Below are positions 22,611 to 50,773 of a DNA stretch of 64,000 nt, piece by piece; the stretch's first letter is position 1; each line of letters begins with the position of its first letter. The notes under the pieces were generated by a model. It was not told the DNA's origin. It saw nothing but the letters and a program-made list of their open reading frames with translations, and did not search any database. The DNA is taken from IMG/VR virus record IMGVR_UViG_3300042350_002797, positions 300,555 to 364,554 of that record; one strand, written 5' to 3'. Both the position numbers and the translations under genes were made by a program.

Positions 22611-25600
22611 TCAGGTTACTCCGCCGGCGTCAATACTGGATATTCCACCATAGTTACTGTCAGGTTGACCACCATCTAAGTTACCGAATGTGCCGCCGGT
22701 GCCGCCACCGGTTCCTGAACTACCAGTATAACCCCTGAGTCCTTGATCACCCTGACTACCTGTAAACCCTGTTCCTTGACTACCAGTAAAGCCGGCAGAT
22801 CCTGCAAAGCCAACTAACCCTCTGCTACCTACAAATCCTATGCTACCAGTAAATCCAGTACTACCTACAAATCCCGAACTACCAGTAAATCCAATTATAC
22901 CTTGTGGACCTGTTAATCCAGTTGCTCCTGACAGGTCGGTTATAAAATTATAAGAAGTGCCTGTCCATAGATATAATCTACTATTTTCTAAATTATCAGG
23001 ATTAGCAGTTTCAATAATAGCAAACTGTCCTGCAATTATTCCTGCAGGACTTGTATCAGAAGTTAACTCTGACACACTAGAATAGATTTTAGCAATTGTA
23101 AATCCTAAACCAGTATCACCTTTACTACCTGTAAAACCAATGTCGCCTTGACTGCCTGTATAGCCATTAGTTCCAGCACTGCCTGTAAAACCAATGTCGC
23201 CTTGACTGCCTGTAAAACCAATGTCGCCTTGACTACCGGTATAGCCATTAGTTCCAGCACTGCCTGTAAAACCAATGTCGCCTTGACTGCCTGTATAGCC
23301 AATATCTCCTTGACTACCGGTAAAACCAATGTCGCCTTGACTGCCTGTATAGCCAATATCTCCTTGACTACCGGTAAAACCAGAACTTCCAGTATATCCT
23401 TGACTACCATCTACTCCTATTATACCGTCAGTTCCTCGACTACCAGTGTAACCAATCACTGTACTAGCCGAACCAGTGTATCCTGTTATACCTTGACTAC
23501 CTGCGAAACCATTACTACCAGTAAAACCAAGATCACCTTTACTGCCTGAGAATCCAACTACGCCTCGACTACCAGTAAATCCTGTTCCTTGACTACCAGT
23601 AAAACCAATTGATCCAGTAAAACCGATGTCACCTCTACTACCGACAAATCCGGTTATGCCCTGACTACCAGTAAATCCTGCACCTTGACTACCAGTAAAT
23701 CCTAAACTACCTGTATAGCCGATCACTGTACTTGCAGATCCAGTAAAACCAATACTACCTGTGTACCCTTGATCGCCTTGACTACCAGTAAAACCAATTT
23801 CCCCTTGTAGACCTTGATCACCTTTACTACCAGTAAATCCTCTACTGCCAGAATATCCTCTTAAACCTTGATTTCCTGTAAGACCTTGACTGCCTGTAAA
23901 TCCTCTACTACCTGTAAAACCTTGATCACCTCTGTCGCCTTGATTTCCAGTGTCGCCTTTACTACCAGTAAATCCTCTGAATCCTTGTTCACCTTGAGCT
24001 CCTGTTATACCTTGACTTCCTGTATATCCTTTTCTGTCATCAATTTTGATAATACCAATCATTCCACTATGAAAAACACATTGATATACAATCTGAGTGG
24101 GTGCATCATACGGAACTCTATAACTGATTAACGTAGATGTGGAATGATTACCTGATGTTGTGTTATTATTAGTCATTCCTGGAACAGTGTCGGTGTTTCC
24201 AGAACTTAATCTAAATGCTAAAGGGTGAGAACTAGTAATATTTTGTAAGTTAAAATATACTAAGTCTCCTTTGAAAACAGTGATAGTAGGATAATTTTCA
24301 TTATAACCATCTATAGTATAAACAAAAGCGCCACCAGGATTATTAAATTTAAATAATTGTCCTCCTTGGCTACCAGTAAAACCTAGTGCAGCATATTCTC
24401 CTGGAATACCTTGACTACCTGTAAACCCAGTACTTCCTGTGAATCCAGATTGACCTCTACTACCAACATACCCAGTGTCACCTTGATCACCTTTACTGCC
24501 AGTAAATCCACGACTACCAGTAAAACCTAGGTCTCCTCGACTACCAACAAATCCAGTGTCACCTTGATCACCTTTACTGCCAGTAAATCCACGACTACCA
24601 GTAAAACCTAGGTCTCCTCGACTACCAACAAATCCAGTGTCTCCTCGACTACCAGTAAAGCCAGTTTGTCCTGTACTACCAGTATAACCAATAATACCTT
24701 GACTACCGGTGTAACCAATAGCTGCTGCTTCTCCTGGAATACCTTGACTACCTGTAAAACCTCTCGAACCGGTTACTCCAATACTGCCTGTAAATCCAGT
24801 ATTACCTTGTATTCCTTGACTACCTACAAATCCTCTGCTACCAGTATATCCTAAGTTTCCTTGCGGTCCTTGTATACCTTGTATACCTTGACTGCCTGTG
24901 AAGCCTCTTAATCCTTGTTCTCCTGTGTCGCCTTTACTACCTGTGTAACCAAAATCTCCTTGGCTACCAGTAAAACCTAGTGCAGCATATTCTCCTGGAA
25001 TACCTTGACTACCTGTAAACCCAGTTACACCTTGACTACCTGTAAACCCAGTACTACCAACAAAACCAGTATCTCCTTGACTACCTGTATATCCAATACT
25101 ACCAGTGAAACCAGTACTTCCTGTGAATCCAGCATCGCCGCGACTACCAGTAAAACCTAGTGCAGCATATTCTCCAGGAATACCTTGACTACCTGTAAAT
25201 CCTCTTGATCCTGTATATCCCAGACTTCCAGTAAAGCCAGTATCTCCTTGAATGCCTTGATCACCTTGATCGCCTTGACTGCCAGTGTAACCAAGAGGCC
25301 CTATTTCCCCTTGATCACCTTGGTTACCTCGACTGCCTGTAAAACCAATAGATCCAGTATATCCGATATCTCCTTGTAAGCCTTGACTACCTGCAAAACC
25401 TAATATTCCTTGACTACCTGTAAATCCTTGACTACCAGTAAATCCAATGCTACCAGTGAAACCAGTACTTCCACTAGATCCCTGACTACCAGTAAATCCT
25501 AAAGCAGCATACTCACCTGGGATACCTTGACTGCCTGTGAAACCAATATCTCCTTGTGAGCCGGTAAATCCAATACTACCGGTGTAGCCTTGTAGCCCAT

Positions 25601-28600
25601 CCGTACCTTGACTGCCTGTGAAACCAATATCTCCTTGTGAGCCGGTAAATCCAATACTACCGGTGTAGCCTTGTAGCCCATCCGTACCTCTACTACCAGT
25701 ATAACCAATATCTCCTTGTGAGCCGGTAAATCCAATACTACCGGTGTAACCAATAGCTGCTGCTTCTCCTGGAATACCTTGACTACCAGTGTAACCAATA
25801 CTACCTACAAATCCTCTACTACCAGTGTATCCTTGATCACCTTGTGGCCCTAGGTCGCCTTGTGGTCCTGGGTCTCCTTGTAAGCCTTGACTACCAGTAA
25901 AACCAATATCACCTTGATCGCCTTGATCACCTTTAAAACCAACACTACCTGTAAATCCTAAACTACCAGTATATCCAATAGGACCTTCTAAACCTTCTTG
26001 ACCTCTTAGTCCTTGACTGCCAGTAAAACCTGTTAGTCCTCTACTTCCTGAGAAACCTGTTATACCTTGACTGCCGATAAATCCTGAACTACCTGTGTAA
26101 CCAATACTACCTGTGTATCCTTGATCGCCTTGACTACCAACAAATCCAGTGTCTCCTCGACTGCCTGTAAAACCAATACTACCAGTATAACCTCTGTCCC
26201 CTGTGCTACCAGTGAAACCTACTGAACCTCTACTACCGGTAAATCCTACACCTTGACTACCAGTGAAACCAATCGATCCAGTGAATCCTTGGTCACCTTG
26301 ACTACCAGTAAATCCTTCTCCTTTACTTCCTGTAAAACCAACACTGCCTGTATAACCAAAGTCGCCTTGACTACCAGTGAAGCCAGTTGCGCCTTGACTG
26401 CCAGTGAAACCTCTACTACCAGTATAACCTGTGTTGCCTTGACTGCCTGTATAACCAAAGTCTCCTTGTGAACCGACAAATCCCTTACTGCCTGTATAAC
26501 CAAAGTCTCCTTGACTACCAGTGAAGCCGATGAATCCTTGTGATCCAGTGTAACCAACACTGCCGGTGAATCCTAAATCGCCGCGACTACCTGTGTAACC
26601 GAAGTCTCCTTGACTACCTGTATAACCAACACTGCCGGTGAATCCTAAATCACCACGACTACCTGTATAACCAAAATTACCTTGACTACCTGTAAATCCA
26701 ACACTACCTGTAAATCCAACACCACGACTGCCAGTGTATCCGATGTCGCCTTGTGAACCAACAAAACCTTGACTACCTGTGTATCCAACACCTGCACTGC
26801 CAGTAAAGCCTAAGTCTCCTTTGCTGCCGCTAAATCCACGACTACCAGTAAATCCTATATTCCCCTGTGATCCGGTATATCCAACAATGCCTTGACTACC
26901 TGTAAATCCAACACTACCAGTAAAGCCTAGGTCTCCTTTGCTACCTGTATATCCTATAGTACCTTGACTACCAGTAAATCCAATACTACCAGTGAATCCA
27001 ATTGATCCGGTATAACCGATATCGCCTTGACTACCTGTATAACCAATAATTCCCTGACTGCCGGTGTAACCAGTACTACCTGTGAATCCTACACCTTGAC
27101 TACCTGTATAACCAATAGGACCTTGAATTACACCTACGTCAGTCCAAGTTGTTCCTGTCCAAATGTACAAATGACCAGTATTAGAAACAATATAGGAATC
27201 ACCTATGTTTCCGGTATAGTCTGAGGGTAATTGATTAGCGTTATTAACAGATCCTATTATTATAACACTAGTACCATCTGAACCTTTGCTACCAGTATAT
27301 CCTTGTTCTCCTTGACTACCAGTATAGCCAATATCTCCACGACTTCCTACAAAACCAGTACTACCTGTATAACCAGTACTACCTGTGTAACCAATATCTC
27401 CTTTACTACCTACAAAACCTATGTCACCTTGACTGCCTGTATAACCTAACGATCCGGTATATCCAAAGTCTCCTTTACTACCTGTTAATCCAATTATACC
27501 TTGACTACCTACATAACCAATACTACCTGTGTAGCCAATATCACCTTGGCTACCTACAAAACCTATGTCACCTTGACTACCTACATAACCTACACTTCCT
27601 GTGTAGCCAATATCACCTTGACTACCTACAAAACCTATGTCACCTTGACTACCTACAAACCCCACCGACCCGGTGTAACCTGTATCGCCTTGTGATCCTG
27701 TATAACCAAAGTCACCTTGACTACCGGTGTATCCTATACTGCCTGTGTAGCCAATATCTCCTTGTGATCCTGTATATCCAAAGTCGCCTTGACTGCCAGT
27801 AAATCCTCTACTTCCTGCAAAGCCAATACCTTGACTACCTGTATATCCAACACCTTGACTACCTGTGAATCCTTGGCTACCTGTATAACCAATATCGCCT
27901 TGACTACCTGTATAACCAAAATCTCCCTGACTGCCGGTAAAGCCTCGACTGCCGGTAAAGCCTTGAACCCCTTGACTACCTACAAATCCAGTATCACCTT
28001 GTGATCCAACAAATCCTTGACTGCCAGTATATCCTGTATCTCCTAAGCTACCGGTATATCCTATACCTTGACTTCCTGTAAAACCAATTGTTCCTTGACT
28101 ACCAGTGAATCCAACTGATCCAGTAAAGCCAATTGATCCAGTAAATCCTAAATCGCCTTTACTACCAGTAAATCCTATAAATCCTCTACTACCAGTAAAT
28201 CCTAAATCGCCTTTACTACCAGTATAACCTTCTGATCCAGTGTATCCTATACCTTCTGATCCAGTATAACCTATATTTCCCTGACTACCTGTATAACCGT
28301 CAGGACCTTGAATTTGTCCTACATTCGTCCAAGTCGATCCTGTCCAAACATATAAGTCTCCAGAAATTAAGTACGAGTCTCCGGCATTACCGCTGGCTGG
28401 AAGATTTGAAATAGAATTTAATGATCCTAAAATAGTAACTGAAGTTCCTGGATCTCCCTTGCTACCCGTGTATCCAACACCTGCACTACCAGTAAATCCT
28501 TTACTTCCTGTGTAACCAAGACTACCTACAAATCCTACACTACCAGTAAATCCTCTACTCCCAGTGTATCCTTTTCCTACTTCTACAATTTCCTGTTTAA

Positions 28601-31600
28601 TTTCTAGTGTAAATGATCTTGATTCACTTTGAGGTACTATGTCTGTAACTGTTACAGTAAATGTACTAGTAGAAAAAACTTCAGTTGGAATTCCAGTTAT
28701 TGATCCTGTAGAAGAACTGAAAAATAAACCAGGAGGTAATGTGCTTGGACTAATAGAATAAGTTAAAGTTCCTTCCCCTCCAGTAGCAGTGACAGGTATT
28801 AATTCTGCTGCTTCTAGTCTAGTAAGAATTACAGGATTAACATTAGATATAGTTGTGATAGGTGTAGGCGGATCTTCATTTACTACTAAAGTAAACGTAT
28901 CAAATTCTGTTTGACTCAAACTATCTGTTACACTTATTGTAAACGTTGTCAAGCCTAAAACACTAGTAGGTGTTCCAGAAATAGATCCCGTACTAGTGTT
29001 AAATGTTAATCCTGTAGGAAGACTAGGACTGATAGAATAAGTTAAAGTTCCTGATCCTTCTGTTGCACTGATTGGAACAAAAGAAGTTATTTGACTATAT
29101 TGAGTAAAAATGTTAGTAGCAGAGTTTACAGTCAATAAAATCTGTGGTGGTAAAACTTCTATTGAAAATGTTACACTATTAGTTTGTCCTGCTTGATCAG
29201 ATACAGTAAAAGTATAGGTAGTTAAATTATTAGCACCACTTGGTGTTCCTGAGAATGTTCCTGTAATAGTATTAAATGTTAAACCACTTGGTAAATTAGG
29301 ACTTATACTAAAAGTTCTTGTACCTGCACCTCCTGACACAGCCACCGGAGTATAGGTTGCAACAACAACATCCTGAGTTAATGTAACAGTTGAAACATTG
29401 GGTGTTAAGACTAAAGCAGGAGGAGAAGTAACTGTTAAACTAAAAGTGTTAGAAGCAGTAGAATTATCAGTATCAGTTACAGTTACGGTAAATGTTGTAG
29501 TGTTTATTATACTAGTAGGTGTTCCACTAATTTGTCCCGTGCTTGTGTTAAAACTTAATCCACTTGGTAAACTTGGACTGATACTGTATGAGTAAGTTCC
29601 TGTTCCTCCAGATCCGGTTACTGGAATAAATGCAGTGGTTAAAATGTTCTGAACAATTGATCTAGATGAAATGTTTTGTACAGCTACTAGAACAGGATTA
29701 ACAACTGTTAAACTAAATGTTTTACTACTAGTTTGACCTAATGAATCCGTTGCAGTAATTGTAAAATTACCAGAACTAGTAGTCGAAGGTGTACCTCCTA
29801 TTCTACCATTACTAGAACTAAATGTTATACCATTAGGAAGACTAGGACTAATATTAAAAGTAATTGATCCATAACCACCAGCAGCACTTACAGGTGCAAC
29901 CGCAGTTGCAGCTTGTAACTTAGTAAATGTAACATTGGCATTTTCTAAAGTCGTAGTAATAGCCGGGGGTAATTCAATTGTTATTATAAACGTATTGCTT
30001 GCAGTTTGGCTGGCTGAATCGCTGACAGTAACCGTGTACGTAGTTTGTACAGATGTAACAGTAGGTGTTCCAGTTATTTGTCCAGTTGATGTAATAAAAC
30101 TTAAACCATTTGGCAAACTTGGACTAATGCTGTAAGACAAAGTTCCACTGCCGCCAGATCCTACAACCGGATTAAAAGGAGTAATAGCAACATTTCTTAT
30201 AAATGTTGATGCATTTGTTGACACAGTTGCATTTAAAGCAGGGGGCGCATTAATAGTTAATGTAAATGTTTTGCTACTAGTTTGATTTACTGTGTCTGAA
30301 ACAGTTATAGTAAAAGTTGTTTGCGATATCGCAGATGTAGGAGTTCCGCTTATTTGTCCACTAGCAGCATTTAAAGTTAAGCCGCTTGGTAAACTTGGAC
30401 TAATGCTATAGGTTAATGCTCCTACGCCACCACTGCCTGATACAGGCGTAAATGCAGCCATCACTGCACCTTGAGTAATAGTTCTTGTAGGAACATTTAC
30501 AGTTGTAGTGATTGGAGGATTAATTACAGATAAAGTAAACGTCTTGCTACTAGTTTGATTTAAAGTATCAGTGGCTGTAACTGTATAGGTTGTAGATCCA
30601 CTTAGAGCAGTAGGTGTTCCAGTAATTTGTCCAGTCGATGTATTAAAATTTAAACCAACTGGAAGTGTAGGACTAATACCGAATGTTAGATTACTATAAC
30701 CCCCACTTGCTGTTACAGGAATAAATGGAGTAATATTAGTGTTAATCACTAGAGAACTAGTAGCAACAGATTGAGTCGTTATAATTGCACTAGGCGCATT
30801 TACTAATAACTGAAAAGTCTTACTGCTAGTTTGATTAGCCTGATCACTTACTATAATAGTAAATATTGTCTGCGATAACGTTACTGTCGAAGTTCCGCTA
30901 ATCTGTCCTGTACCAGAATTGATAGTCAACCCAGAAGGTAAACTTGGGCTTACAGCGTATGCTAAAGTTCCAAATCCTCCACTAGCTGTGACAGGAGTAA
31001 ATGGAGTAACTGCTACATTTTGAGTTGCTGTAAAATTCGAAACTGATACAGTAGTCGTTATAGGTGCAGCATTTACTGTTAGAGTAAATGTACTACTACT
31101 AGTTTGACCTACTGAATCTGTTATAGTAACTGTATAAGTCGTTGTTCCGCTTACACCTGTTGGTGTTCCGGTTATTTGTCCAGTGCTTGTGTTAAAACTC
31201 AATCCAGATGGTAAGTTTGGACTAATATTGTATGATAACGGAGAAACACCACCTGACACTGTGACAGGTGTAAATGGTGTAACGATTGCACCTTGTGTAA
31301 GTGTTGGAATATTAGTGGAAGTCGCAGGAACTATTGCAGGTGGTGTATTCACCGTTAAACTAAAAGTCTTACTGCTTGTTTGATCTGCGGTGTCTGTTAC
31401 TGTAACTGTAAAGGTAGTTTGAGTTAAGGTAACAGATGGTGTTCCTGATATAGATCCATTTGTAGTATTAAATTGTAGACCACTTGGTAAAGTTGGACTA
31501 ATGCTATAGGTCAATGCTCCTACGCCGCCACTGCCTGTCACTGGAGTGAAAGTAGCTGCTGCAACAAACTGTGTAAGGATTCTTGATGCAATTGCTTGAG

Positions 31601-32183
31601 TAGAAGATAAAATAGCAAGTCCAGATTCCACAGTTAGATTAAATGTTGTACTACCAACCTGACCTGCACTGTCAGTAAATGTTACTACATAAGTTGTATT
31701 TGCAGTAGCGACTGTTGGAGTTCCGGATAAGGTTAGTTCTACACTATTAAATAAATTACTTGTACCATCAGTATTTTGAATAGTGATTACAGTTTTATTA
31801 GTAGCAGTTAAAGTTATCCCTGCCGGTAATGCTGGACTAACTGTAAAATTTAAAATCGGAGTTGTGCCAGGAGAACTTACACTTGTTCCACCTGTTGGTA
31901 TAATAGCAGCTCCTCCAACTGCCTTTACTACAGTTGTAGTAAATGAATTATTTCTAACTACTACATTATTATTTGATAAAGTATTGACAGTTATACTTGG
32001 TCTAGCTACAGGAGGTTTGATCCCCGTAGGTTGTGGCCAAACTAATTTTCCTGCACTTAGTCCTGTGCCAGCGGCAGCTCTAAATATTGCTCCGTTTTGA
32101 TTTATAAAGTAATCGCCTACAGCGTATGAAAAATTTGTACTAGCTGGAGTGCTTAATGGATAAGGATAATAAAAAATTGCCAT
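22611..32183 (-). CDS. Giant fibre (3190 aa): 12 putative-Ig repeats + long collagen-like G-X-Y region with inserted globular domains
   Basis: 12 LPxGL.F...TG.I.GTP repeats, then a very long run of G[FY]TGS units; YQCVFHSGM cupredoxin-like insert. Confidence 0.9.
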   Translation of the reverse strand: MAIFYYPYPLSTPASTNFSYAVGDYFINQNGAIFRAAAGTGLSAGKLVWPQPTGIKPPVARPSITVNTLSNNNVVVRNNSFTTTVVKAVGGAAIIPTGGTSVSSPGTTPILNFTVSPALPAGITLTATNKTVITIQNTDGTSNLFNSVELTLSGTPTVATANTTYVVTFTDSAGQVGSTTFNLTVESGLAILSSTQAIASRILTQFVAAATFTPVTGSGGVGALTYSISPTLPSGLQFNTTNGSISGTPSVTLTQTTFTVTVTDTADQTSSKTFSLTVNTPPAIVPATSTNIPTLTQGAIVTPFTPVTVSGGVSPLSYNISPNLPSGLSFNTSTGQITGTPTGVSGTTTYTVTITDSVGQTSSSTFTLTVNAAPITTTVSVSNFTATQNVAVTPFTPVTASGGFGTLAYAVSPSLPSGLTINSGTGQISGTSTVTLSQTIFTIIVSDQANQTSSKTFQLLVNAPSAIITTQSVATSSLVINTNITPFIPVTASGGYSNLTFGISPTLPVGLNFNTSTGQITGTPTALSGSTTYTVTATDTLNQTSSKTFTLSVINPPITTTVNVPTRTITQGAVMAAFTPVSGSGGVGALTYSISPSLPSGLTLNAASGQISGTPTSAISQTTFTITVSDTVNQTSSKTFTLTINAPPALNATVSTNASTFIRNVAITPFNPVVGSGGSGTLSYSISPSLPNGLSFITSTGQITGTPTVTSVQTTYTVTVSDSASQTASNTFIITIELPPAITTTLENANVTFTKLQAATAVAPVSAAGGYGSITFNISPSLPNGITFSSSNGRIGGTPSTTSSGNFTITATDSLGQTSSKTFSLTVVNPVLVAVQNISSRSIVQNILTTAFIPVTGSGGTGTYSYSISPSLPSGLSFNTSTGQISGTPTSIINTTTFTVTVTDTDNSTASNTFSLTVTSPPALVLTPNVSTVTLTQDVVVATYTPVAVSGGAGTRTFSISPNLPSGLTFNTITGTFSGTPSGANNLTTYTFTVSDQAGQTNSVTFSIEVLPPQILLTVNSATNIFTQYSQITSFVPISATEGSGTLTYSISPSLPTGLTFNTSTGSISGTPTSVLGLTTFTISVTDSLSQTEFDTFTLVVNEDPPTPITTISNVNPVILTRLEAAELIPVTATGGEGTLTYSISPSTLPPGLFFSSSTGSITGIPTEVFSTSTFTVTVTDIVPQSESRSFTLEIKQEIVEVGKGYTGSRGFTGSVGFVGSLGYTGSKGFTGSAGVGYTGSKGDPGTSVTILGSLNSISNLPASGNAGDSYLISGDLYVWTGSTWTNVGQIQGPDGYTGSQGNIGYTGSEGIGYTGSEGYTGSKGDLGFTGSRGFIGFTGSKGDLGFTGSIGFTGSVGFTGSQGTIGFTGSQGIGYTGSLGDTGYTGSQGFVGSQGDTGFVGSQGVQGFTGSRGFTGSQGDFGYTGSQGDIGYTGSQGFTGSQGVGYTGSQGIGFAGSRGFTGSQGDFGYTGSQGDIGYTGSIGYTGSQGDFGYTGSQGDTGYTGSVGFVGSQGDIGFVGSQGDIGYTGSVGYVGSQGDIGFVGSQGDIGYTGSIGYVGSQGIIGLTGSKGDFGYTGSLGYTGSQGDIGFVGSKGDIGYTGSTGYTGSTGFVGSRGDIGYTGSQGEQGYTGSKGSDGTSVIIIGSVNNANQLPSDYTGNIGDSYIVSNTGHLYIWTGTTWTDVGVIQGPIGYTGSQGVGFTGSTGYTGSQGIIGYTGSQGDIGYTGSIGFTGSIGFTGSQGTIGYTGSKGDLGFTGSVGFTGSQGIVGYTGSQGNIGFTGSRGFSGSKGDLGFTGSAGVGYTGSQGFVGSQGDIGYTGSRGVGFTGSVGFTGSQGNFGYTGSRGDLGFTGSVGYTGSQGDFGYTGSRGDLGFTGSVGYTGSQGFIGFTGSQGDFGYTGSKGFVGSQGDFGYTGSQGNTGYTGSRGFTGSQGATGFTGSQGDFGYTGSVGFTGSKGEGFTGSQGDQGFTGSIGFTGSQGVGFTGSRGSVGFTGSTGDRGYTGSIGFTGSRGDTGFVGSQGDQGYTGSIGYTGSSGFIGSQGITGFSGSRGLTGFTGSQGLRGQEGLEGPIGYTGSLGFTGSVGFKGDQGDQGDIGFTGSQGLQGDPGPQGDLGPQGDQGYTGSRGFVGSIGYTGSQGIPGEAAAIGYTGSIGFTGSQGDIGYTGSRGTDGLQGYTGSIGFTGSQGDIGFTGSQGTDGLQGYTGSIGFTGSQGDIGFTGSQGIPGEYAALGFTGSQGSSGSTGFTGSIGFTGSQGFTGSQGILGFAGSQGLQGDIGYTGSIGFTGSRGNQGDQGEIGPLGYTGSQGDQGDQGIQGDTGFTGSLGYTGSRGFTGSQGIPGEYAALGFTGSRGDAGFTGSTGFTGSIGYTGSQGDTGFVGSTGFTGSQGVTGFTGSQGIPGEYAALGFTGSQGDFGYTGSKGDTGEQGLRGFTGSQGIQGIQGPQGNLGYTGSRGFVGSQGIQGNTGFTGSIGVTGSRGFTGSQGIPGEAAAIGYTGSQGIIGYTGSTGQTGFTGSRGDTGFVGSRGDLGFTGSRGFTGSKGDQGDTGFVGSRGDLGFTGSRGFTGSKGDQGDTGYVGSRGQSGFTGSTGFTGSQGIPGEYAALGFTGSQGGQLFKFNNPGGAFVYTIDGYNENYPTITVFKGDLVYFNLQNITSSHPLAFRLSSGNTDTVPGMTNNNTTSGNHSTSTLISYRVPYDAPTQIVYQCVFHSGMIGIIKIDDRKGYTGSQGITGAQGEQGFRGFTGSKGDTGNQGDRGDQGFTGSRGFTGSQGLTGNQGLRGYSGSRGFTGSKGDQGLQGEIGFTGSQGDQGYTGSIGFTGSASTVIGYTGSLGFTGSQGAGFTGSQGITGFVGSRGDIGFTGSIGFTGSQGTGFTGSRGVVGFSGSKGDLGFTGSNGFAGSQGITGYTGSASTVIGYTGSRGTDGIIGVDGSQGYTGSSGFTGSQGDIGYTGSQGDIGFTGSQGDIGYTGSQGDIGFTGSAGTNGYTGSQGDIGFTGSQGDIGFTGSAGTNGYTGSQGDIGFTGSKGDTGLGFTIAKIYSSVSELTSDTSPAGIIAGQFAIIETANPDNLENSRLYLWTGTSYNFITDLSGATGLTGPQGIIGFTGSSGFVGSTGFTGSIGFVGSRGLVGFAGSAGFTGSQGTGFTGSQGDQGLRGYTGSSGTGGGTGGTFGNLDGGQPDSNYGGISSIDAGGVT
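22720..28575 (-). repeat. Collagen-like G[FY]TGSxG coding repeats
   Basis: Degenerate 9/18/27-nt periodic repeats (e.g. ccttgactaccagtaaa). Confidence 0.9.
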
Positions 32184-32185
32184 AG

Positions 32186-33364
32186 TTAACCTTGTGCTCT
32201 AACTGTTAAATCTAATAAAGAATTATATCCTAATCCTGTATCTACCATAATAAAAATACTCTCTGTACCATCGTCATAATAAAAGTCTCCAGGTATCAGA
32301 TCTTCAATAGTTAATCCGGCAGCAGCATCTGTATTTGTATACATCCTAGGAGCTTTAGTTGTTTGAATTGTTCCGTTAGGAAATACTAACCCTTCAGCTT
32401 TAATATATTGTAAGTTGCCTGAAGGAAGTGTAACTTTTAGAGCACCATCTATTGGATCAATACTAAGTACCGTGCCGCCAATATCTATAGAGTTACTTCC
32501 AACATAAATGGTTCCAAATCTATTTGTAGGGGATCCTAAATTTTGTAAACCATCAGTTGCCGGAATAATACTATATCCTGCATCTACAGTAATTGTATCT
32601 ATTCCATTACTGCTCATGCCGTCTACTATGCCAGCGCTACCTGTGTATCCAATATTGCCTTGGCTACCAGTATATCCTATGTCACCTTGACTACCAGTAA
32701 ATCCATTAGTTCCAGCACTGCCAGTAAATCCATTAGTTCCAGCACTACCTGTATATCCATTAGTTCCAGCACTACCAGTAAATCCATTAGTTCCAGCACT
32801 GCCAGTAAATCCATTAGTTCCAGCACTGCCAGTAAATCCATTAGTTCCAGCACTACCTGTAAATCCATTAGTTCCAGCACTGCCAGTAAATCCATTAGTT
32901 CCAGCACTGCCAGTAAATCCATTAGTTCCAGCACTACCTGTATATCCTGGAATTGTACTAGCAGATCCTGTGTATCCACTATTACCTTGACTACCAGTAA
33001 ACCCATTAGTTCCAGCACTACCTGTATATCCAAGACTACCTTGACTACCAGTAAATCCTCGTGGACCAGTTCCGTCGCCACCTGCAACAGAAAACCAATC
33101 AGGAGATGCTCCATCATCGTAATAAATGCTTAATTCATTATTATCAGGATTGTACCATATAGTGCCATTTGTTGGTTCAACTGGTTCTATGTTACTAATA
33201 GTAGTAACAGAATTACCTCCTATAGGATTTCCACCGGGTGTAGACCCGTCGCTGAGACGTAACTCTCCGGTTTCAATGTTGAAAAATAGATTACCTTCCT
33301 CACCAATAAATGATTCTATATCATTCTTGACAAGACCGGCTTTAATTTTACGGAAAAATGCCAC
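32186..33364 (-). CDS. Collagen-like fibre/structural protein
   Basis: GTG start; GELRLSDGSTPGG N-domain; GFTGSAGTN repeats. Confidence 0.8.
   Translation of the reverse strand: MAFFRKIKAGLVKNDIESFIGEEGNLFFNIETGELRLSDGSTPGGNPIGGNSVTTISNIEPVEPTNGTIWYNPDNNELSIYYDDGASPDWFSVAGGDGTGPRGFTGSQGSLGYTGSAGTNGFTGSQGNSGYTGSASTIPGYTGSAGTNGFTGSAGTNGFTGSAGTNGFTGSAGTNGFTGSAGTNGFTGSAGTNGFTGSAGTNGYTGSAGTNGFTGSAGTNGFTGSQGDIGYTGSQGNIGYTGSAGIVDGMSSNGIDTITVDAGYSIIPATDGLQNLGSPTNRFGTIYVGSNSIDIGGTVLSIDPIDGALKVTLPSGNLQYIKAEGLVFPNGTIQTTKAPRMYTNTDAAAGLTIEDLIPGDFYYDDGTESIFIMVDTGLGYNSLLDLTVRAQG
32703..32945 (-). repeat. 27-bp tandem repeat x9 (G[FY]TGSAGTN)
   Basis: Near-identical ccattagttccagcactgccagtaaat units. Confidence 0.9.
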
Positions 33365-33399
33365 ACTAAATTCCTTGATTTAGTGTATTTATTGGTTTA

Positions 33400-33657
33400 T
33401 TACTTTTGGAAGATTGGGTTATCAGGATCGTGTTCCTCTTCGTCTTGTGTTAGATCTTGAATAATAGGACTGACTTTCCCTTGTTCAGCTTTTTTCATTT
33501 CAATATCTTGTTGCAACGGAGGAACCATTACAGGATTATCTTTGAGCTCAGTTGGATCTTTGGCATCATCTGTACCGGGCATATCAATTTCTGGTTCTGC
33601 ATCACCATTTATTTTGATCGTTATTGGCACATTGATAGTGAATTCTCTAGCTCTCAT
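33400..33657 (-). CDS. Hypothetical late protein
   Basis: MRAREF start; GGAG RBS and TAAATA upstream. Confidence 0.7.
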   Translation of the reverse strand: MRAREFTINVPITIKINGDAEPEIDMPGTDDAKDPTELKDNPVMVPPLQQDIEMKKAEQGKVSPIIQDLTQDEEEHDPDNPIFQK

Positions 33658-33690
33658 TCAGATTCTCCGTGCTTTTATTTATCGTTACTG

Positions 33691-33719
33691 TTGACTTCAG
33701 GAATAAGAGATAATATACT
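33691..33719 (+). promoter_or_regulatory. Sigma70 promoter predicting a leaderless mRNA
   Basis: TTGACT-N17-TATACT; ATG starts 7 nt after the -10; no SD. Confidence 0.7.
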
Positions 33720-33725
33720 TTAGCT

Positions 33726-34025
33726 ATGAAATATAATCCAAAAGAACCTATTGAACAATGGGCTGAACGAGTTAGCTTGCATGAATATGGCGAAGCTGTA
33801 AAACAAATTGCTGCTGGCCAAGATGTTGATCAAGTAATGGAAGCAATGAGTGCTAGAATTGTTCAAAAATTAAAACACCCAATGCTTGTTCAAATCAAAG
33901 AATGGGGTAAATCTACGTATGATGCTACTTTATCTAAGACACGATATAAAAAGAATTACTTAGATAAGACTAAACCAGTTGCGGATCACATGAATGATGT
34001 AGATGATCCTAATTATACTATTTGA
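33726..34025 (+). CDS. Stand-alone glutamyl-tRNA reductase (HemA) dimerisation-domain-like protein
   Basis: AVKQIAAGQDVDQVMEAMSARIVQKLKHP resembles the HemA C-terminal AL..L..G.D...VL..LA..LTNKL.H.P; only + strand gene inside the late arm. Confidence 0.55.
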   Translation: MKYNPKEPIEQWAERVSLHEYGEAVKQIAAGQDVDQVMEAMSARIVQKLKHPMLVQIKEWGKSTYDATLSKTRYKKNYLDKTKPVADHMNDVDDPNYTI

Positions 34026-34243
34026 GCTAGACCGTATACAGCATACACTAGCATAGTTTTGGTATGCATGTCGTCTGCCTCCGAATCTAATACATCTGTT
34101 CTAACTAAATCTTCCAGTAATTCTTTATATTCATCTGGACTAATTTGTCCGCTACTATACTGAGCCTGCAATTCTAATGCCATTTGCGCTCGTTGCGCTA
34201 CCCAAGGTTTATCGCTTTGTGCTAATTGATATAAATCGCTCAT
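34013..34243 (-). CDS. Hypothetical protein
   Basis: ORF coupled to the upstream lipoprotein gene. Confidence 0.65.
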   Translation of the reverse strand: MSDLYQLAQSDKPWVAQRAQMALELQAQYSSGQISPDEYKELLEDLVRTDVLDSEADDMHTKTMLVYAVYGLAQIV

Positions 34244-34627
34244 TTAAAATCTCCCAATAACTGCTTTGGCTACCGTACCACTTTGTGTATCTAATATTTT
34301 CTTTTTCATATTACAGTAGGCTTCACTGCCTTGTTTAACCATACTACGATCATAAAAGTCATTTACAGTTTCATTCATCGGCTTCACTAGACGTAGTACA
34401 TCTCTAGTGTCTTTAACTTGACTATAAATGATTAACCAATCCATGTGTTTCTTAATTACGGCTACTTGAGGTGCATGTGGTTGTTTACAATCTAAATCTA
34501 AAACACTTTGTCTAATATCTATTACTGAACGACTTTGATTATCATCCCAGAAGCTAGGAATCTTATCTTTAATTGTACTACAGCCTACAAGTAATACAAC
34601 AAGTAAGCTGGCTGCTATTTTACGCAT
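34244..34627 (-). CDS. Putative lipoprotein
   Basis: MRKIAASLLVVLLVGC lipobox. Confidence 0.7.
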   Translation of the reverse strand: MRKIAASLLVVLLVGCSTIKDKIPSFWDDNQSRSVIDIRQSVLDLDCKQPHAPQVAVIKKHMDWLIIYSQVKDTRDVLRLVKPMNETVNDFYDRSMVKQGSEAYCNMKKKILDTQSGTVAKAVIGRF

Positions 34628-34682
34628 CAATGTTCTCCGTATGGAATAATAGGACGATCATCGTCTGGATTATCTGGGCCAA

Positions 34683-35117
34683 TCAGTTGCACCATGATTG
34701 TTTAGCTTCTCCATAATACTCTCGAGCAAACCCATTAGCGATTAATTGAGCACGTAAACTTTGACCATCTAGAATAATGTCGCCTAGCACACGGCCGCCG
34801 AACTTATCCCAACCGTAAAGTACTACAAATCGCTGTGTGCTTCGTGCTACTAACTGTGTTGTAAATTTTGTAGCCATAGCACCACGTTCTGCTTCACTTG
34901 GGCATTGCGCTCTGTGTCCTTTTTCAGGTGTATCTACACCGTATACACGAACTGCTAATTGAGGTTTGATTGGCGCTGGCAAATAAGGAGCAGCAATAAC
35001 AACTGTATCGCCATCTGTGACTTTTAAAATCTGTGCTTCGTAGGTAACGCCCTGTGGTTGCTTTTGAGCGAAGGCAAACAACGGCAATACTGCTAGTAAT
35101 AATAATAGTTTTTTCAT
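34683..35117 (-). CDS. Secreted thermonuclease (SNase) family protein
   Basis: Signal peptide; DGDT, VRVYGVDTPE, DKFGGRVLG, LIANGFA. Confidence 0.85.
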   Translation of the reverse strand: MKKLLLLLAVLPLFAFAQKQPQGVTYEAQILKVTDGDTVVIAAPYLPAPIKPQLAVRVYGVDTPEKGHRAQCPSEAERGAMATKFTTQLVARSTQRFVVLYGWDKFGGRVLGDIILDGQSLRAQLIANGFAREYYGEAKQSWCN

Positions 35118-38347: not shown

Positions 38348-39178
38348 TTAAACTTCTAAGTCTAACCACTCGTAAACATTTAACCATTTACGTCTGCCCA
38401 CGGTTTCTTTAAGATGTGTTAGATCTGCACAGGTCTTAGCTCTAAATCTTGATTTTTCTGCGTCTGGCATAGGAATTAATCTAAGTTCTACGCCTTCTTG
38501 TTCTGCAATATGCTCTGCTATATCTAAGAAACTATGTGCTAAGCCGCTGCCTACATTCCAAATTCCACTGCCTTTAACTGTAAGTATGAAATCTAAGTGT
38601 ATTTTACAAACATCACCTACCCATGTCCAATCTCTTTTGATATGTTCTGCATTTTCCCAAACTTCTATGTAGCCCTGTTTACGTGCCTGTTGTCGCCATT
38701 TATAGATAGCATTAGCCCTACGGCCACGCAAATGCATCCATTTTCCATATACATTAAAATATCTAAATCCTTGAACGAAAGCGGTATGTGTTTGGCTAAA
38801 AATATACCTGTCGCTAAGATACTTACTCCAAGCATAAGCAGTTTGAGGAGTACAAGGTGCAAATTCACTGAAATTTTTAGTGTCACCGTAGACACTGCTA
38901 GAACTAGCATATTGTAGATTTACACCATGCTTTTGGCATTCATGATAGAGCCAAATAGTGAAATCATAATTTTGATACATGACTTTTTCTACATCAGTTT
39001 CAGTCATGTCAGCTATGGCACCGAGATGAATGACCCAATCATATTCAAGTACAACAGGCCATTCATCTCGATTAGGACTCCAGTTCCAGCCTTGAACTAC
39101 CCATTCAGGCTGAAGATGAAGATAAGACATCATATTCCGGCCGATAAATCCTTCACAACCGGTCACTAATACTCTCAT
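38348..39178 (-). CDS. hldD: Second HldD-like NAD-dependent epimerase
   Basis: GCEGFIG, HLGAI, YASSSSVYG, YAWSK, GFRYFNVYG. Confidence 0.75.
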   Translation of the reverse strand: MRVLVTGCEGFIGRNMMSYLHLQPEWVVQGWNWSPNRDEWPVVLEYDWVIHLGAIADMTETDVEKVMYQNYDFTIWLYHECQKHGVNLQYASSSSVYGDTKNFSEFAPCTPQTAYAWSKYLSDRYIFSQTHTAFVQGFRYFNVYGKWMHLRGRRANAIYKWRQQARKQGYIEVWENAEHIKRDWTWVGDVCKIHLDFILTVKGSGIWNVGSGLAHSFLDIAEHIAEQEGVELRLIPMPDAEKSRFRAKTCADLTHLKETVGRRKWLNVYEWLDLEV

Positions 39179-49641: not shown

Positions 49642-49717
49642 GCACTGGTAGCTCAACGGTTAGAGCCGGAGTCTCTAAAGCTCAAGGTTATGGGTTCGAA
49701 TCCCATTCGGTGCACCA
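49642..49717 (+). tRNA. Amber suppressor tRNA, anticodon CTA
   Basis: 76-nt cloverleaf: GCACTGG/TCGGTGC acceptor, GCTC/GAGC D-stem, anticodon loop CT-CTA-AA (CTA at 49675-77 = positions 34-36), ATGGG-TTCGAAT-CCCAT T-arm, A73, encoded CCA. Confidence 0.85.
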
Positions 49718-50584: not shown

Positions 50585-50773
50585 ATGGTAATACAATTAC
50601 AAAGAGATATTAATTTTAATCAATTGGAAGCAGACTTAGAAGCGTTAAGACTCACACCAAAAAAAGATTATAAATTAACGTTTCATTACGAAGATAATGA
50701 AATATCCATAGAGTTTATGAACCCTATGAAAGCCAGTTTATGGAGAATTGCGGTTGGCTATAAGTATATCTGA
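50585..50773 (+). CDS. Small protein, probably leaderless
   Basis: TTGACT(50550)-N17-TATACT; ATG 50585 is 7 nt after the -10. Confidence 0.55.
   Translation: MVIQLQRDINFNQLEADLEALRLTPKKDYKLTFHYEDNEISIEFMNPMKASLWRIAVGYKYI

Follow-up and report, generated by a model that had tools for sequence, protein, structure and literature searches.

The window analyzed here is a 64,000-nt stretch of the IMG/VR virus record IMGVR_UViG_3300042350_002797 (positions 300,555 to 364,554 of that record), the 364-kb genome of a jumbo phage. Near its middle, between genes of the late arm on the minus strand, lies a small plus-strand gene with its own promoter. The gene, its product (dd below) and the surrounding features are as follows (window coordinates).

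33400..33657 (-): divergent neighbor, a conserved 85-aa gene of unknown function with a GGAGA Shine-Dalgarno sequence, the first gene of the next late unit, which leads into the tail-fibre genes
33676..33683 (-): GATAAATA, a T4-type late-promoter-like motif 18 nt before the ATG of the 85-aa gene
33691..33696 (+): -35 hexamer TTGACT of a sigma-70-type (early-class) promoter
33714..33719 (+): -10 hexamer TATACT, 17 nt after the -35 hexamer and 6 nt before the ATG
33726..34025 (+): dd gene, 99 codons with an ATG start plus a TGA stop, a stand-alone protein resembling the dimerization domain of glutamyl-tRNA reductase (GluTR, also HemA or GtrR); probable leaderless mRNA with +1 at or next to the A of the ATG
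33753..33908 (+): residues 10-61 of dd, a helical hairpin homologous to E. coli HemA 349-400 and the predicted interface with HemA
33909..34022 (+): residues 62-99 of dd, a third helix and acidic tail with the family-specific invariants Y74, D87 and H88 (P-x-A-D-H), not covered by the GluTR profile match
34013..34243 (-): convergent neighbor, a 76-aa gene whose 3' end overlaps the 3' end of the dd gene by 13 nt

The observation made in the sequence-only reading, a leaderless-type plus-strand gene for a HemA dimerization-domain-like protein, is confirmed. The dd gene is the only plus-strand ORF of 90 aa or more between about 475 and 41419 that is not nested inside a larger minus-strand ORF. However, the claim that it is inserted against the late operon needs a qualification, because the late arm is not a single operon but consists of several units, each with its own late-type promoter. 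In the whole genome, the motif [ACG]ATAAATA has 53 sites, of which 44 have an ORF ATG within 60 nt, against 18 of 166 for a control motif; the site upstream of the 85-aa gene is conserved in 5 of 6 relatives. The dd gene therefore sits between two late units, and the 68-nt gap that separates it from the 85-aa gene is a divergent promoter region. No terminator lies between the dd gene and the 76-aa gene (the fold z-score is about 0), and the next terminator-like site on the plus strand is at about 34900. Neither dd nor its two small neighbors matched a PHROG family.

The dd promoter is the best promoter-like site in 33000-35000, with 10 of 12 matches, and no GGAG-like core is present upstream of the gene. 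In six diverged relatives TTGAC is invariant, and TATAnT, the spacing and the 6-7-nt distance to the ATG are conserved, while the spacer and discriminator vary. Promoters of the same type, with a 16-18-nt spacer, are dense in the plus arm at 55.5-64 kb. Genome-wide, 10 of 73 such promoters have an ORF ATG 6-7 nt after the -10 hexamer, and the distance from the -10 to the ATG is bimodal, at 6-7 nt and at about 30 nt. About ten other genes of this phage, including those for DnaJ and a primase, have the same layout, and these sister genes start their Pfam domains at residues 2-6. This marks dd as one of a class of sigma-70-type, probably early, genes. The dd gene itself is probably transcribed as a leaderless mRNA from its own promoter, although this is inferred from promoter geometry. 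Three metatranscriptome runs hold only scraps; one 230-nt contig without direction covers 33670-33899, begins upstream of the -35 hexamer, and neither supports nor refutes a leaderless start. A comparable arrangement is that of leaderless phage and bacterial mRNAs such as lambda cI from PRM, which likewise lack a Shine-Dalgarno sequence and have the start codon at the distance from the -10 hexamer where transcription normally starts. Here, about ten genes of one jumbo phage share one fixed layout, TTGACA-N17-TATAAT-N6/7-ATG.

A Pfam profile search, which had been proposed as a test of the HemA resemblance, matched residues 10-61 of dd to positions 30-81 of GlutR_dimer (PF00745) with 28.4 bits against a gathering score of 22.9 (E 2.1e-6). 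Of 93 diverse family members, 90 hit the same profile at E <= 0.01 (best E 8.5e-10), and they hit only PF00745 among 24,736 Pfam models. The family profile has its best PDB hits in GluTR, namely 1gpj (residues 338-391) and the A. thaliana GluTR dimerization domain 4yvq, and hhalign places residues 10-61 on E. coli HemA 349-400; these E-values against individual GluTRs are modest, 0.05 and 1.8e-4, respectively. A PDB sequence search with the single protein gave only noise. The match covers two helices, with E, A, G, K/R and H-P at GluTR-conserved positions, and an AF2 model (pLDDT 89.7) has helices at residues 9-29, 34-60 and 67-79, in line with the three-helix architecture of the GluTR domain. 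Fold comparison agreed only in part. All 30 best Foldseek hits in AlphaFold-DB Swiss-Prot are the C-terminal ~80 residues of β- and γ-proteobacterial GluTRs (probability 0.91-1.0), but with E 0.05-0.4, TM by query 0.47-0.55 and high rmsd, whereas Foldseek against PDB and VIA-align against 48,161 chains returned only generic helical hairpins, no GluTR, and were uninformative.

The protein is not a glutamyl-tRNA reductase, as it lacks the catalytic and NADPH-binding domains, and no GlutR_N match was found in the 364-kb genome. The JGI label "glutamyl-tRNA reductase" carried by relatives is therefore wrong as an enzyme name. A split or complemented pathway was also looked for in the genome, but neither an AlaS-type aminotransferase nor pmoC was found. 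The dN/dS ratio of 0.03-0.13 and conserved synteny show that dd is a real protein under purifying selection. It has 59 close homologs, and the family comprises 158 clusters at 50% identity, nearly all stand-alone proteins of about 85-105 aa; one 654-aa protein with 7 matched stretches is repetitive and unrelated and was treated as a spurious hit. The family is seen only in viral and metagenomic sequence. The nearest ESM Atlas clusters are 92-100% viral. No match was found in 50,697 GenBank phage records, either by DNA or by tblastn with three different family members, and none in the genomes of about 185,000 cellular species, searched with patterns from one family alignment (A1), a second one (A2) being too diverse to make patterns. 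In A2, Y74 is conserved in 100%, D87 in 97% and H88 in 88% of sequences; together with W12, these most invariant family-specific residues are not GluTR features.

The gene neighborhoods of diverged relatives provide a strong link to tetrapyrrole metabolism, which could not be seen in the sequence-only reading. In 37 of 77 IMG/VR loci, and on 4 separate metagenome contigs, the gene heads a same-strand cluster dd-[DnaK]-HSP20-ClpS-heme oxygenase-bilin reductase, in which the dd proteins are only 30-42% identical to each other. Besides the 37 loci, the adjacency is seen in loci that we label L027, L029-31, L040 and L042. The immediate downstream neighbor of dd is DnaK or HSP20, followed by ClpS, and the cluster always ends in heme oxygenase and bilin reductase. 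In this phage, DnaK-HSP20-ClpS-HemO-desaturases-bilin reductase, with a sigma-70-type promoter before ClpS, lies 60 kb from dd, and 0 of 80 loci of this phage and its clade show linkage; the association is by family and not by position here. In this clade the gene has left the cluster without being lost. The leaderless promoter is absent from the cluster-type relatives and is a feature of this clade only. A 409-421-aa protein that follows the bilin reductase in L027 and L042 has no counterpart next to the bilin reductase of this phage. Some other relatives lie in a tRNA array on contigs where no heme oxygenase was found.

Attempts to infer the host failed. The phage is present in lake samples. 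The DUF179 protein found nothing in cellular genomes. The phage DnaK is about 72% identical to E. coli and Pseudomonas DnaK, which is only a weak hint of a proteobacterial host, and a virion protein is 57% identical to T4-like cyanophage proteins, but the phage has no psbA.

A predicted complex of dd with E. coli HemA 300-418 (HEM1_ECOLI) scored 0.71, against 0.00 for the best of 3 controls, but this is a model only, it may reflect memory of solved GluTR homodimers, and it used E. coli HemA rather than the enzyme of the real host. The mark was reached by 58 of 80 solved complexes and 2 of 110 mismatched pairs. The runs agree in at least 62% of contacts, and the partner pLDDT is at least 67. 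The interface uses residues 9-62, with equivalent residues facing each other as in a two-fold dimer, whereas the third helix and tail make no contacts with HemA.

The explanation that we favor, tentatively and with less than even confidence, is that dd is a subunit mimic of host GluTR. Its first two helices would pair with the equivalent helices of a host subunit, giving a mixed dimer in place of the V-shaped homodimer and resetting the first committed step of tetrapyrrole synthesis, alongside the phage ClpS, HSP20/DnaK, heme oxygenase and bilin reductase. We favor an inhibitory or destabilizing effect: when the phage heme oxygenase lowers heme, the host would otherwise stabilize GluTR and divert Glu-tRNA(Glu) and NADPH into new heme. 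GluTR is a Clp substrate, through ClpS1/ClpF/ClpC in plants and through Clp and Lon in Salmonella (PMC6597238), and phage ALA synthase has been proposed to free Glu-tRNA for translation (PMC11480375). Our data establish the homology, the purifying selection, the promoter architecture and the gene linkage, whereas the early timing, the leaderless start, the binding to GluTR, the direction of the effect and the benefit to the phage are inferences. The interpretation offered in the sequence-only reading, a dominant-negative mimic that poisons HemA dimers and keeps Glu-tRNA for phage translation or alters heme supply, is thus supported only in part: a stand-alone domain homolog and a probable leaderless mRNA are supported, but binding to HemA, inhibition rather than stabilization or a decoy action, and use of the C5 pathway by the host are not shown. 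If the host were an alphaproteobacterium using ALA synthase, there would be no GluTR target. The position of Y74, D87 and H88 outside the predicted interface suggests an additional or different partner, and in the clusters dd sits next to the chaperone genes and not directly next to heme oxygenase.

An opposite effect is possible but less likely. The mimic could bind GluTR and shield it from heme-triggered Clp/Lon proteolysis, or act as a decoy for a negative regulator that recognizes the dimerization domain, as FLU does in plants, so that ALA and heme keep flowing to the phage heme oxygenase and bilin reductase. The homology and the predicted complex are equally compatible with this scenario. 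In it, dd would be a functional analog of phage ALA synthase, whose gene valaS occupies a comparable place in published three-gene cassettes, where the proposed role is to maintain or raise ALA (PMC11480375); the addition of ALA synthase to the same hemO-bilin reductase cassette argues for boosting ALA supply rather than blocking it. The ClpS gene is adjacent in the clusters, and the phage has no AlaS of its own, so any heme substrate must come from the host pathway. On the other hand, no dimerization-domain fragment is known to activate GluTR, no FLU-like regulator is known in bacteria, and the known degron of bacterial and plant GluTR is N-terminal, not in the dimerization domain (PMC6597238). 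Equally unlikely, in our view, is that dd descends from a GluTR dimerization domain but now serves as a homodimeric adaptor or regulator with the phage proteostasis proteins (DnaK, DnaJ, HSP20, ClpS), or on another target, with no action on GluTR. The chaperone neighbors, the family-specific residues and the third helix and tail (absent from GluTR and, apart from W12, outside the predicted interface), the relatives in a tRNA array and the departure from the cluster in this clade agree with this scenario. However, the GluTR hallmark pattern in helices 1-2 is retained across 158 clusters, the clusters always end in heme oxygenase and bilin reductase, and no similarity to known co-chaperones or adaptors was found in Pfam.

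Two further possibilities have little or no support. An early, outward-firing promoter with no terminator after the gene could produce an antisense RNA across the late genes for the 76-aa protein, a lipoprotein and a nuclease and delay their expression, but the protein is under strong purifying selection, and its family persists in quite different contexts without this promoter; this could be an added effect, not the main function. A chance ORF or a false homology caused by generic coiled-coil composition, suggested by the unspecific fold matches of helical hairpins and the modest single-protein E-values, is effectively refuted by the dN/dS of about 0.1, the conserved synteny, the specificity of the Pfam matches and the Swiss-Prot fold hits.

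Comparison with described systems shows where dd differs. From the C-terminal domain of GluTR itself it differs in being a stand-alone protein, in its conserved third helix and tail and W12, and in its viral and metagenomic distribution. The hemO-pcyA/pcyX(-valaS) cassettes of freshwater phages contain the same heme oxygenase plus ferredoxin-dependent bilin reductase pair and a third gene aimed at the ALA-forming step, and the idea of sparing Glu-tRNA for translation has been voiced there (PMC11480375). Here, the third gene encodes not an enzyme but a fragment of the oligomerization domain of the host enzyme, DnaK/HSP20 and ClpS lie between it and hemO, and in this phage it is unlinked from the cluster; that paper does not mention it, and searches of the accessible literature found no description of phage GluTR-domain proteins. 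Post-translational control of GluTR in plants involves FLU, which binds the dimerization domain (PMC4726326), GBP, and ClpS1/ClpF-ClpC proteolysis, with ClpAP/Lon proteolysis as a further route (PMC6597238). Control through the C-terminal domain and Clp adaptors resembles the situation proposed here, with ClpS as a conserved neighbor, but FLU is a TPR protein, GBP is unrelated, neither mimics GluTR, and no such regulator is known from phages or bacteria. Small single-domain proteins homologous to the oligomerization domain of a larger multi-domain protein, such as Id proteins and LITTLE ZIPPER, typically form non-productive heteromers; these microProteins are eukaryotic and target transcription factors, whereas the putative target of dd would be a host metabolic enzyme and its source is a virus.

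The large dd family, currently mislabeled by automatic annotation, may represent a regulatory auxiliary gene of a new type in freshwater jumbo phages, a microprotein copied from the oligomerization domain of a host enzyme, although this reading remains doubtful. Together with a phage ClpS it would set the activity or Clp-dependent turnover of host GluTR while phage heme oxygenase and bilin reductase consume heme. If so, it is the first viral regulator of the C5 pathway and a direct viral grip on the partition of Glu-tRNA(Glu) between translation and tetrapyrrole synthesis. As a side result, the class of about ten genes with a fixed promoter-to-ATG geometry makes this phage a useful natural set for studying leaderless translation. 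Known phage genes for tetrapyrrole metabolism encode enzymes, i.e., heme oxygenase, bilin reductases and ALA synthase, whereas dd would be a regulator made from a piece of the host's own rate-limiting enzyme. It would extend the idea of auxiliary metabolic genes to subunit mimicry, make the proposed competition between translation and heme synthesis for Glu-tRNA(Glu) directly testable with a 99-residue protein, and give a handle on the question why phages of non-photosynthetic hosts carry heme-degrading genes.

The dimerisation-domain-like gene is an ATG-to-TGA ORF of 99 codons on the + strand of the window. From about 475 to 41419 every non-nested ORF of 90 aa or more lies on the - strand, with this single exception. 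That arm encodes virion proteins, several collagen-like tail fibres and an endolysin-like protein. The features of the locus and of its surroundings in the late arm are as follows.
33691-33696 (+), hexamer TTGACT, separated by a 17-nt spacer from the next hexamer
33714-33719 (+), hexamer TATACT, followed by 6 nt and the ATG
33726-34025 (+), the 99-codon ORF
33676-33683 (-), GATAAATA, 18 nt before the divergent 85-aa gene
34244-35117 (-), a 128-aa predicted lipoprotein (cysteine after the signal peptide) and a 144-aa staphylococcal-nuclease-like protein with a signal peptide, inside the late arm and close to the endolysin-like gene
22611-32183 (-), a 3190-aa protein with an N-terminal series of roughly 90-residue repeats followed by very long G-x-T-G-S collagen-like repeats, presumably a tail fibre
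32186-33364 (-), a 392-aa collagen-like protein, presumably also a tail fibre

The two hexamers form the best sigma-70-like site in 33000-35000, with 10 of 12 matches. No Shine-Dalgarno core precedes the gene, whereas the divergent 85-aa gene has GGAGA; about half of the phage ORFs have such a core, compared with 13% at control positions. The sequence-only reading, which described a lone + strand gene in the late arm with its own promoter and no Shine-Dalgarno sequence, was correct in its observation.

The gene is real. We found 59 proteins of 68-97% identity in lake metagenomes, almost all of them 94-105 aa long. They retain the same place and orientation: the 85-aa gene (-), a 68-nt gap, the gene considered here (+), and then small genes, a nuclease, DUF454, HNH, DUF179 and an endolysin-like gene (-). 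Pairwise dN/dS among five lineages is 0.03-0.13, with dS above 0.85.

Homology to HemA (glutamyl-tRNA reductase, GluTR) was examined at the level of sequence and predicted structure. The Pfam GlutR_dimer profile scores 28.4 bits (cut-off 22.9, E 2.1e-6), with residues 10-61 on profile positions 30-81. An exhaustive phmmer search of 1.84 billion representatives yielded 158 clusters at E <= 1e-3, nearly all of them stand-alone proteins of 85-105 aa and none a full-length GluTR. Of 93 diverse family members (alignment A2), 90 hit PF00745 and essentially nothing else. The best PDB hits of the A2 profile are GluTR from M. kandleri (1gpj, residues 338-391) and the A. thaliana GluTR dimerisation domain (4yvq), although with weak E-values of 0.05 and 0.28, respectively. 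In a profile alignment with hhalign, residues 10-61 are placed on E. coli HemA 349-400, with E 1.8e-4. The AlphaFold2 model (pLDDT 89.7) contains helices at 9-29, 34-60 and 67-79 and a less confident tail. Fold searches of the PDB with this model returned only generic hairpins. However, against AlphaFold-DB Swiss-Prot all 30 best hits are glutamyl-tRNA reductases of gamma- and beta-proteobacteria, in which model residues 9-86/93 align to the last ~80 residues, for example P. aeruginosa 346-422 at 29% identity. The genome has no GlutR_N domain. Thus, the protein is a stand-alone homologue of the dimerisation domain, not an enzyme, and the JGI name 'glutamyl-tRNA reductase' assigned to relatives is misleading.

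The invariants of the family are W12, E20, A24, G31, K48, H51-P52, Y74 and D87-H88. Of these, E20, A24, G31, K48 and H51-P52 occupy positions conserved in GluTR, as read from the alignments with the PDB structures and with E. coli HemA, whereas W12, Y74 and D87-H88 are the family's own.

In six diverged relatives, TTGAC, TATAnT and the ATG are invariant. The hexamer spacing stays at 17 nt (17 or 18 nt in one relative locus, L001), and the ATG follows the -10 hexamer by 6-7 nt, whereas the spacer and the stretch before the ATG differ. In another relative locus, L038, the family-consensus start is the second ATG, 7 nt after the -10. Genome-wide, we observed 73 TTGACN-N17-TANNNT sites, for which the distance from the -10 to an ORF-opening ATG is bimodal, with 6-7 nt at 10 sites and about 30-32 nt at 15 sites, the latter corresponding to a second class with leaders of about 30 nt. 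The first class comprises about ten genes with the layout TTGACA-N17-TATAAT followed 6-7 nt later by the ATG, for example the ATG at 50585 (+) in the window. The other genes of this class encode DnaJ, a phosphopantetheinyl transferase, UvdE, a Toprim primase, a PD-(D/E)XK nuclease and a Pol III alpha fragment. The J domain of DnaJ begins at residue 2 and the domain of the transferase begins at residue 6; therefore, these ATGs are true starts. Leaderless translation, as inferred from this geometry, is thus a class feature of this phage. Sigma-70-type promoters are dense in the small-gene + arm at 55.5-64 kb.

On the - strand, GATAAATA resembles the T4 late promoter TATAAATA. Genome-wide, the motif [ACG]ATAAATA has 53 sites, of which 44 have an ORF ATG within 60 nt, compared with 18 of 166 for a control motif. 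In the window it lies 15-30 nt before ORF starts on the - strand, preceding the genes that start at 39178, 33657, 22580 and 12122. The 68-nt gap is therefore a divergent region with an early-type and a late-type promoter, and the late arm consists of several transcription units rather than the single late operon assumed in the sequence-only reading. Early timing is inferred by analogy with T4. No terminator follows the gene, which overlaps the convergent 76-aa gene by 13 nt. The only RNA-library evidence is one contig covering 33670-33899, which carries no direction and neither supports nor refutes the leaderless start.

The window is the last 64 kb of a 364,554-bp IMG/VR record. The ends of the record (1-175 and 364,380-364,554) overlap directly over at least about 125 nt, indicating a circular, complete assembly, although IMG/VR lists the record as linear; the first 45 nt are an inverted copy of the following sequence, probably an assembly artefact. 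GC content is about 36%, and near-identical DNA occurs in 17 lake-water runs. The genome carries 28 tRNAs. One of them, at 249332-249407 (-) outside the window, is the phage's own tRNA-Glu(UUC), which host GluTR may or may not be able to use but which bears on any model of the partition of Glu-tRNA. Another, at 49642-49717 (+) in the window, is called by ARAGORN as a tRNA with anticodon CTA ('tRNA-Pyl'), that is, an amber-suppressor-type tRNA; coding density under code 11 is already about 88%, so no recoding is evident. The host could not be identified, and the sigma-70-type promoters, the use of Shine-Dalgarno sequences, a DnaK about 72% identical to gammaproteobacterial DnaK and the beta/gamma-proteobacterial GluTR fold hits point only weakly to a proteobacterial host.

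The main new evidence comes from the gene context in relatives. Four family members that are only 34-37% identical to this protein (P0065, P0072, P0084 and P0128) each head the same cluster on one strand, which consists of the dimerisation-domain gene (hereinafter dd), HSP20, ClpS, heme oxygenase and ferredoxin-dependent bilin reductase. In a further relative locus (L018/G004), the order is dd, a 313-aa gene and DnaK, with heme oxygenase 3.8 kb downstream. In cluster-type phages the bilin reductase is followed by a conserved protein of 409-421 aa with no Pfam family (L027 6038-7303 and L042 8395-9624 in two such loci, 50% identity between the two), which has no counterpart next to the bilin reductase of this phage.

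A census of IMG/VR loci around heme oxygenase gave two contrasting results. Among 77 loci of the cluster type, 39 carry a dd gene within 6 kb, and 37 of these have the order dd-[DnaK]-HSP20-ClpS-HemO-bilin reductase, 24 with DnaK and 13 without. In contrast, among the 80 loci closest to the heme oxygenase of this phage, none carries dd, whereas all 80 carry HSP20 and ClpS, 78 carry DnaK and 75 carry the bilin reductase. The loci in this census are related phages, and hence the counts are not independent events. Even so, the dd proteins in them are only 30-42% identical to each other, which means that the linkage has been kept over long divergence.

The phage itself has DnaK-HSP20-ClpS-HemO-two fatty-acid desaturases-bilin reductase at about 268.7-274.2 kb (268,700-274,200, - strand, outside the window), with a sigma-70-type promoter, TTGACA-N17-TATAAT, 45 nt before ClpS. 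The simplest history is that in this clade, which includes P0061 at 48% identity, the gene left the head of the cluster, moved into the late arm and acquired a leaderless early-type promoter. Cluster-type relatives have no such promoter. Another arrangement is provided by relatives of 49-54% identity (loci L014-L017, 2923-3001), in which the ATG of dd lies 4 nt after the CCA end of tRNA-Gly(UCC) inside a tRNA array (Trp, Thr, Gly, dd, Leu, Met). Here, tRNA processing would leave an almost leaderless mRNA.

GluTR is the controlled step of the C5 pathway. Plant GluTR1 is selected for Clp proteolysis by ClpS1/ClpF/ClpC binding to its N-terminus, and bacterial GluTR turnover is by Clp and Lon (PMC6597238). 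FLU inhibits plant GluTR by binding its dimerisation domain (PMC4726326). Phage hemO-pcyA/X cassettes, sometimes with ALA synthase, have been described, and sparing Glu-tRNA for translation has been proposed for them (PMC11480375); that paper mentions no GluTR fragment, and no ClpS or HSP20 neighbours of phage hemO. No GenBank phage record and no cellular reference genome in our searches, and no paper found, covers the family described here, and the nearest ESM Atlas clusters are 92-100% viral. The family falls among both phage tetrapyrrole auxiliary genes and interaction-domain mimics.

We modelled a complex of this protein (with the A2 alignment) and E. coli HemA 300-418, and the prediction supports binding. 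The model scored 0.71, whereas the best of three controls scored 0.00; that mark was reached by 58 of 80 solved complexes and by 2 of 110 mismatched pairs. The runs share at least 62% of contacts, and partner pLDDT is at least 67. In the model, residues 9-62 touch HemA 340-400, and equivalent residues face each other (HemA 377, 381, 384 and 388 with phage 38, 42, 45 and 49), as in a two-fold dimer. However, solved GluTR dimers may explain this score, and E. coli is not the host.

Several alternatives compete with the reading of the protein as an inhibitory or destabilising subunit mimic of host GluTR. The protein could be a stabiliser or decoy that raises ALA supply, by analogy with phage ALA synthase, or it could be a module exapted to work with the chaperones or with another target. 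The latter possibility is favoured by the family-specific Y74 and D87-H88, which lie outside the modelled interface, and by the chaperone neighbours. We consider both of these unlikely, and about equally so. An antisense or promoter role is very unlikely, and an artefact is all but excluded.

The sequence-only reading suggested a dominant-negative mimic that poisons HemA dimers and retains Glu-tRNA for phage translation, or alters heme supply; our data support this interpretation in part. The existence of the gene, its homology, the selection acting on it, its promoter architecture and its gene linkage follow directly from the analysis, whereas binding to GluTR, the direction of the effect and the nature of the host are matters of inference. 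With this in mind, we tentatively read the protein as a subunit mimic of host GluTR that would work with the ClpS, chaperone and heme-catabolic genes of the phage. We favour inhibition or destabilisation, because a heme drop caused by the phage oxygenase would otherwise stabilise GluTR, as in the Salmonella model (PMC6597238), and drain Glu-tRNA(Glu) and NADPH.
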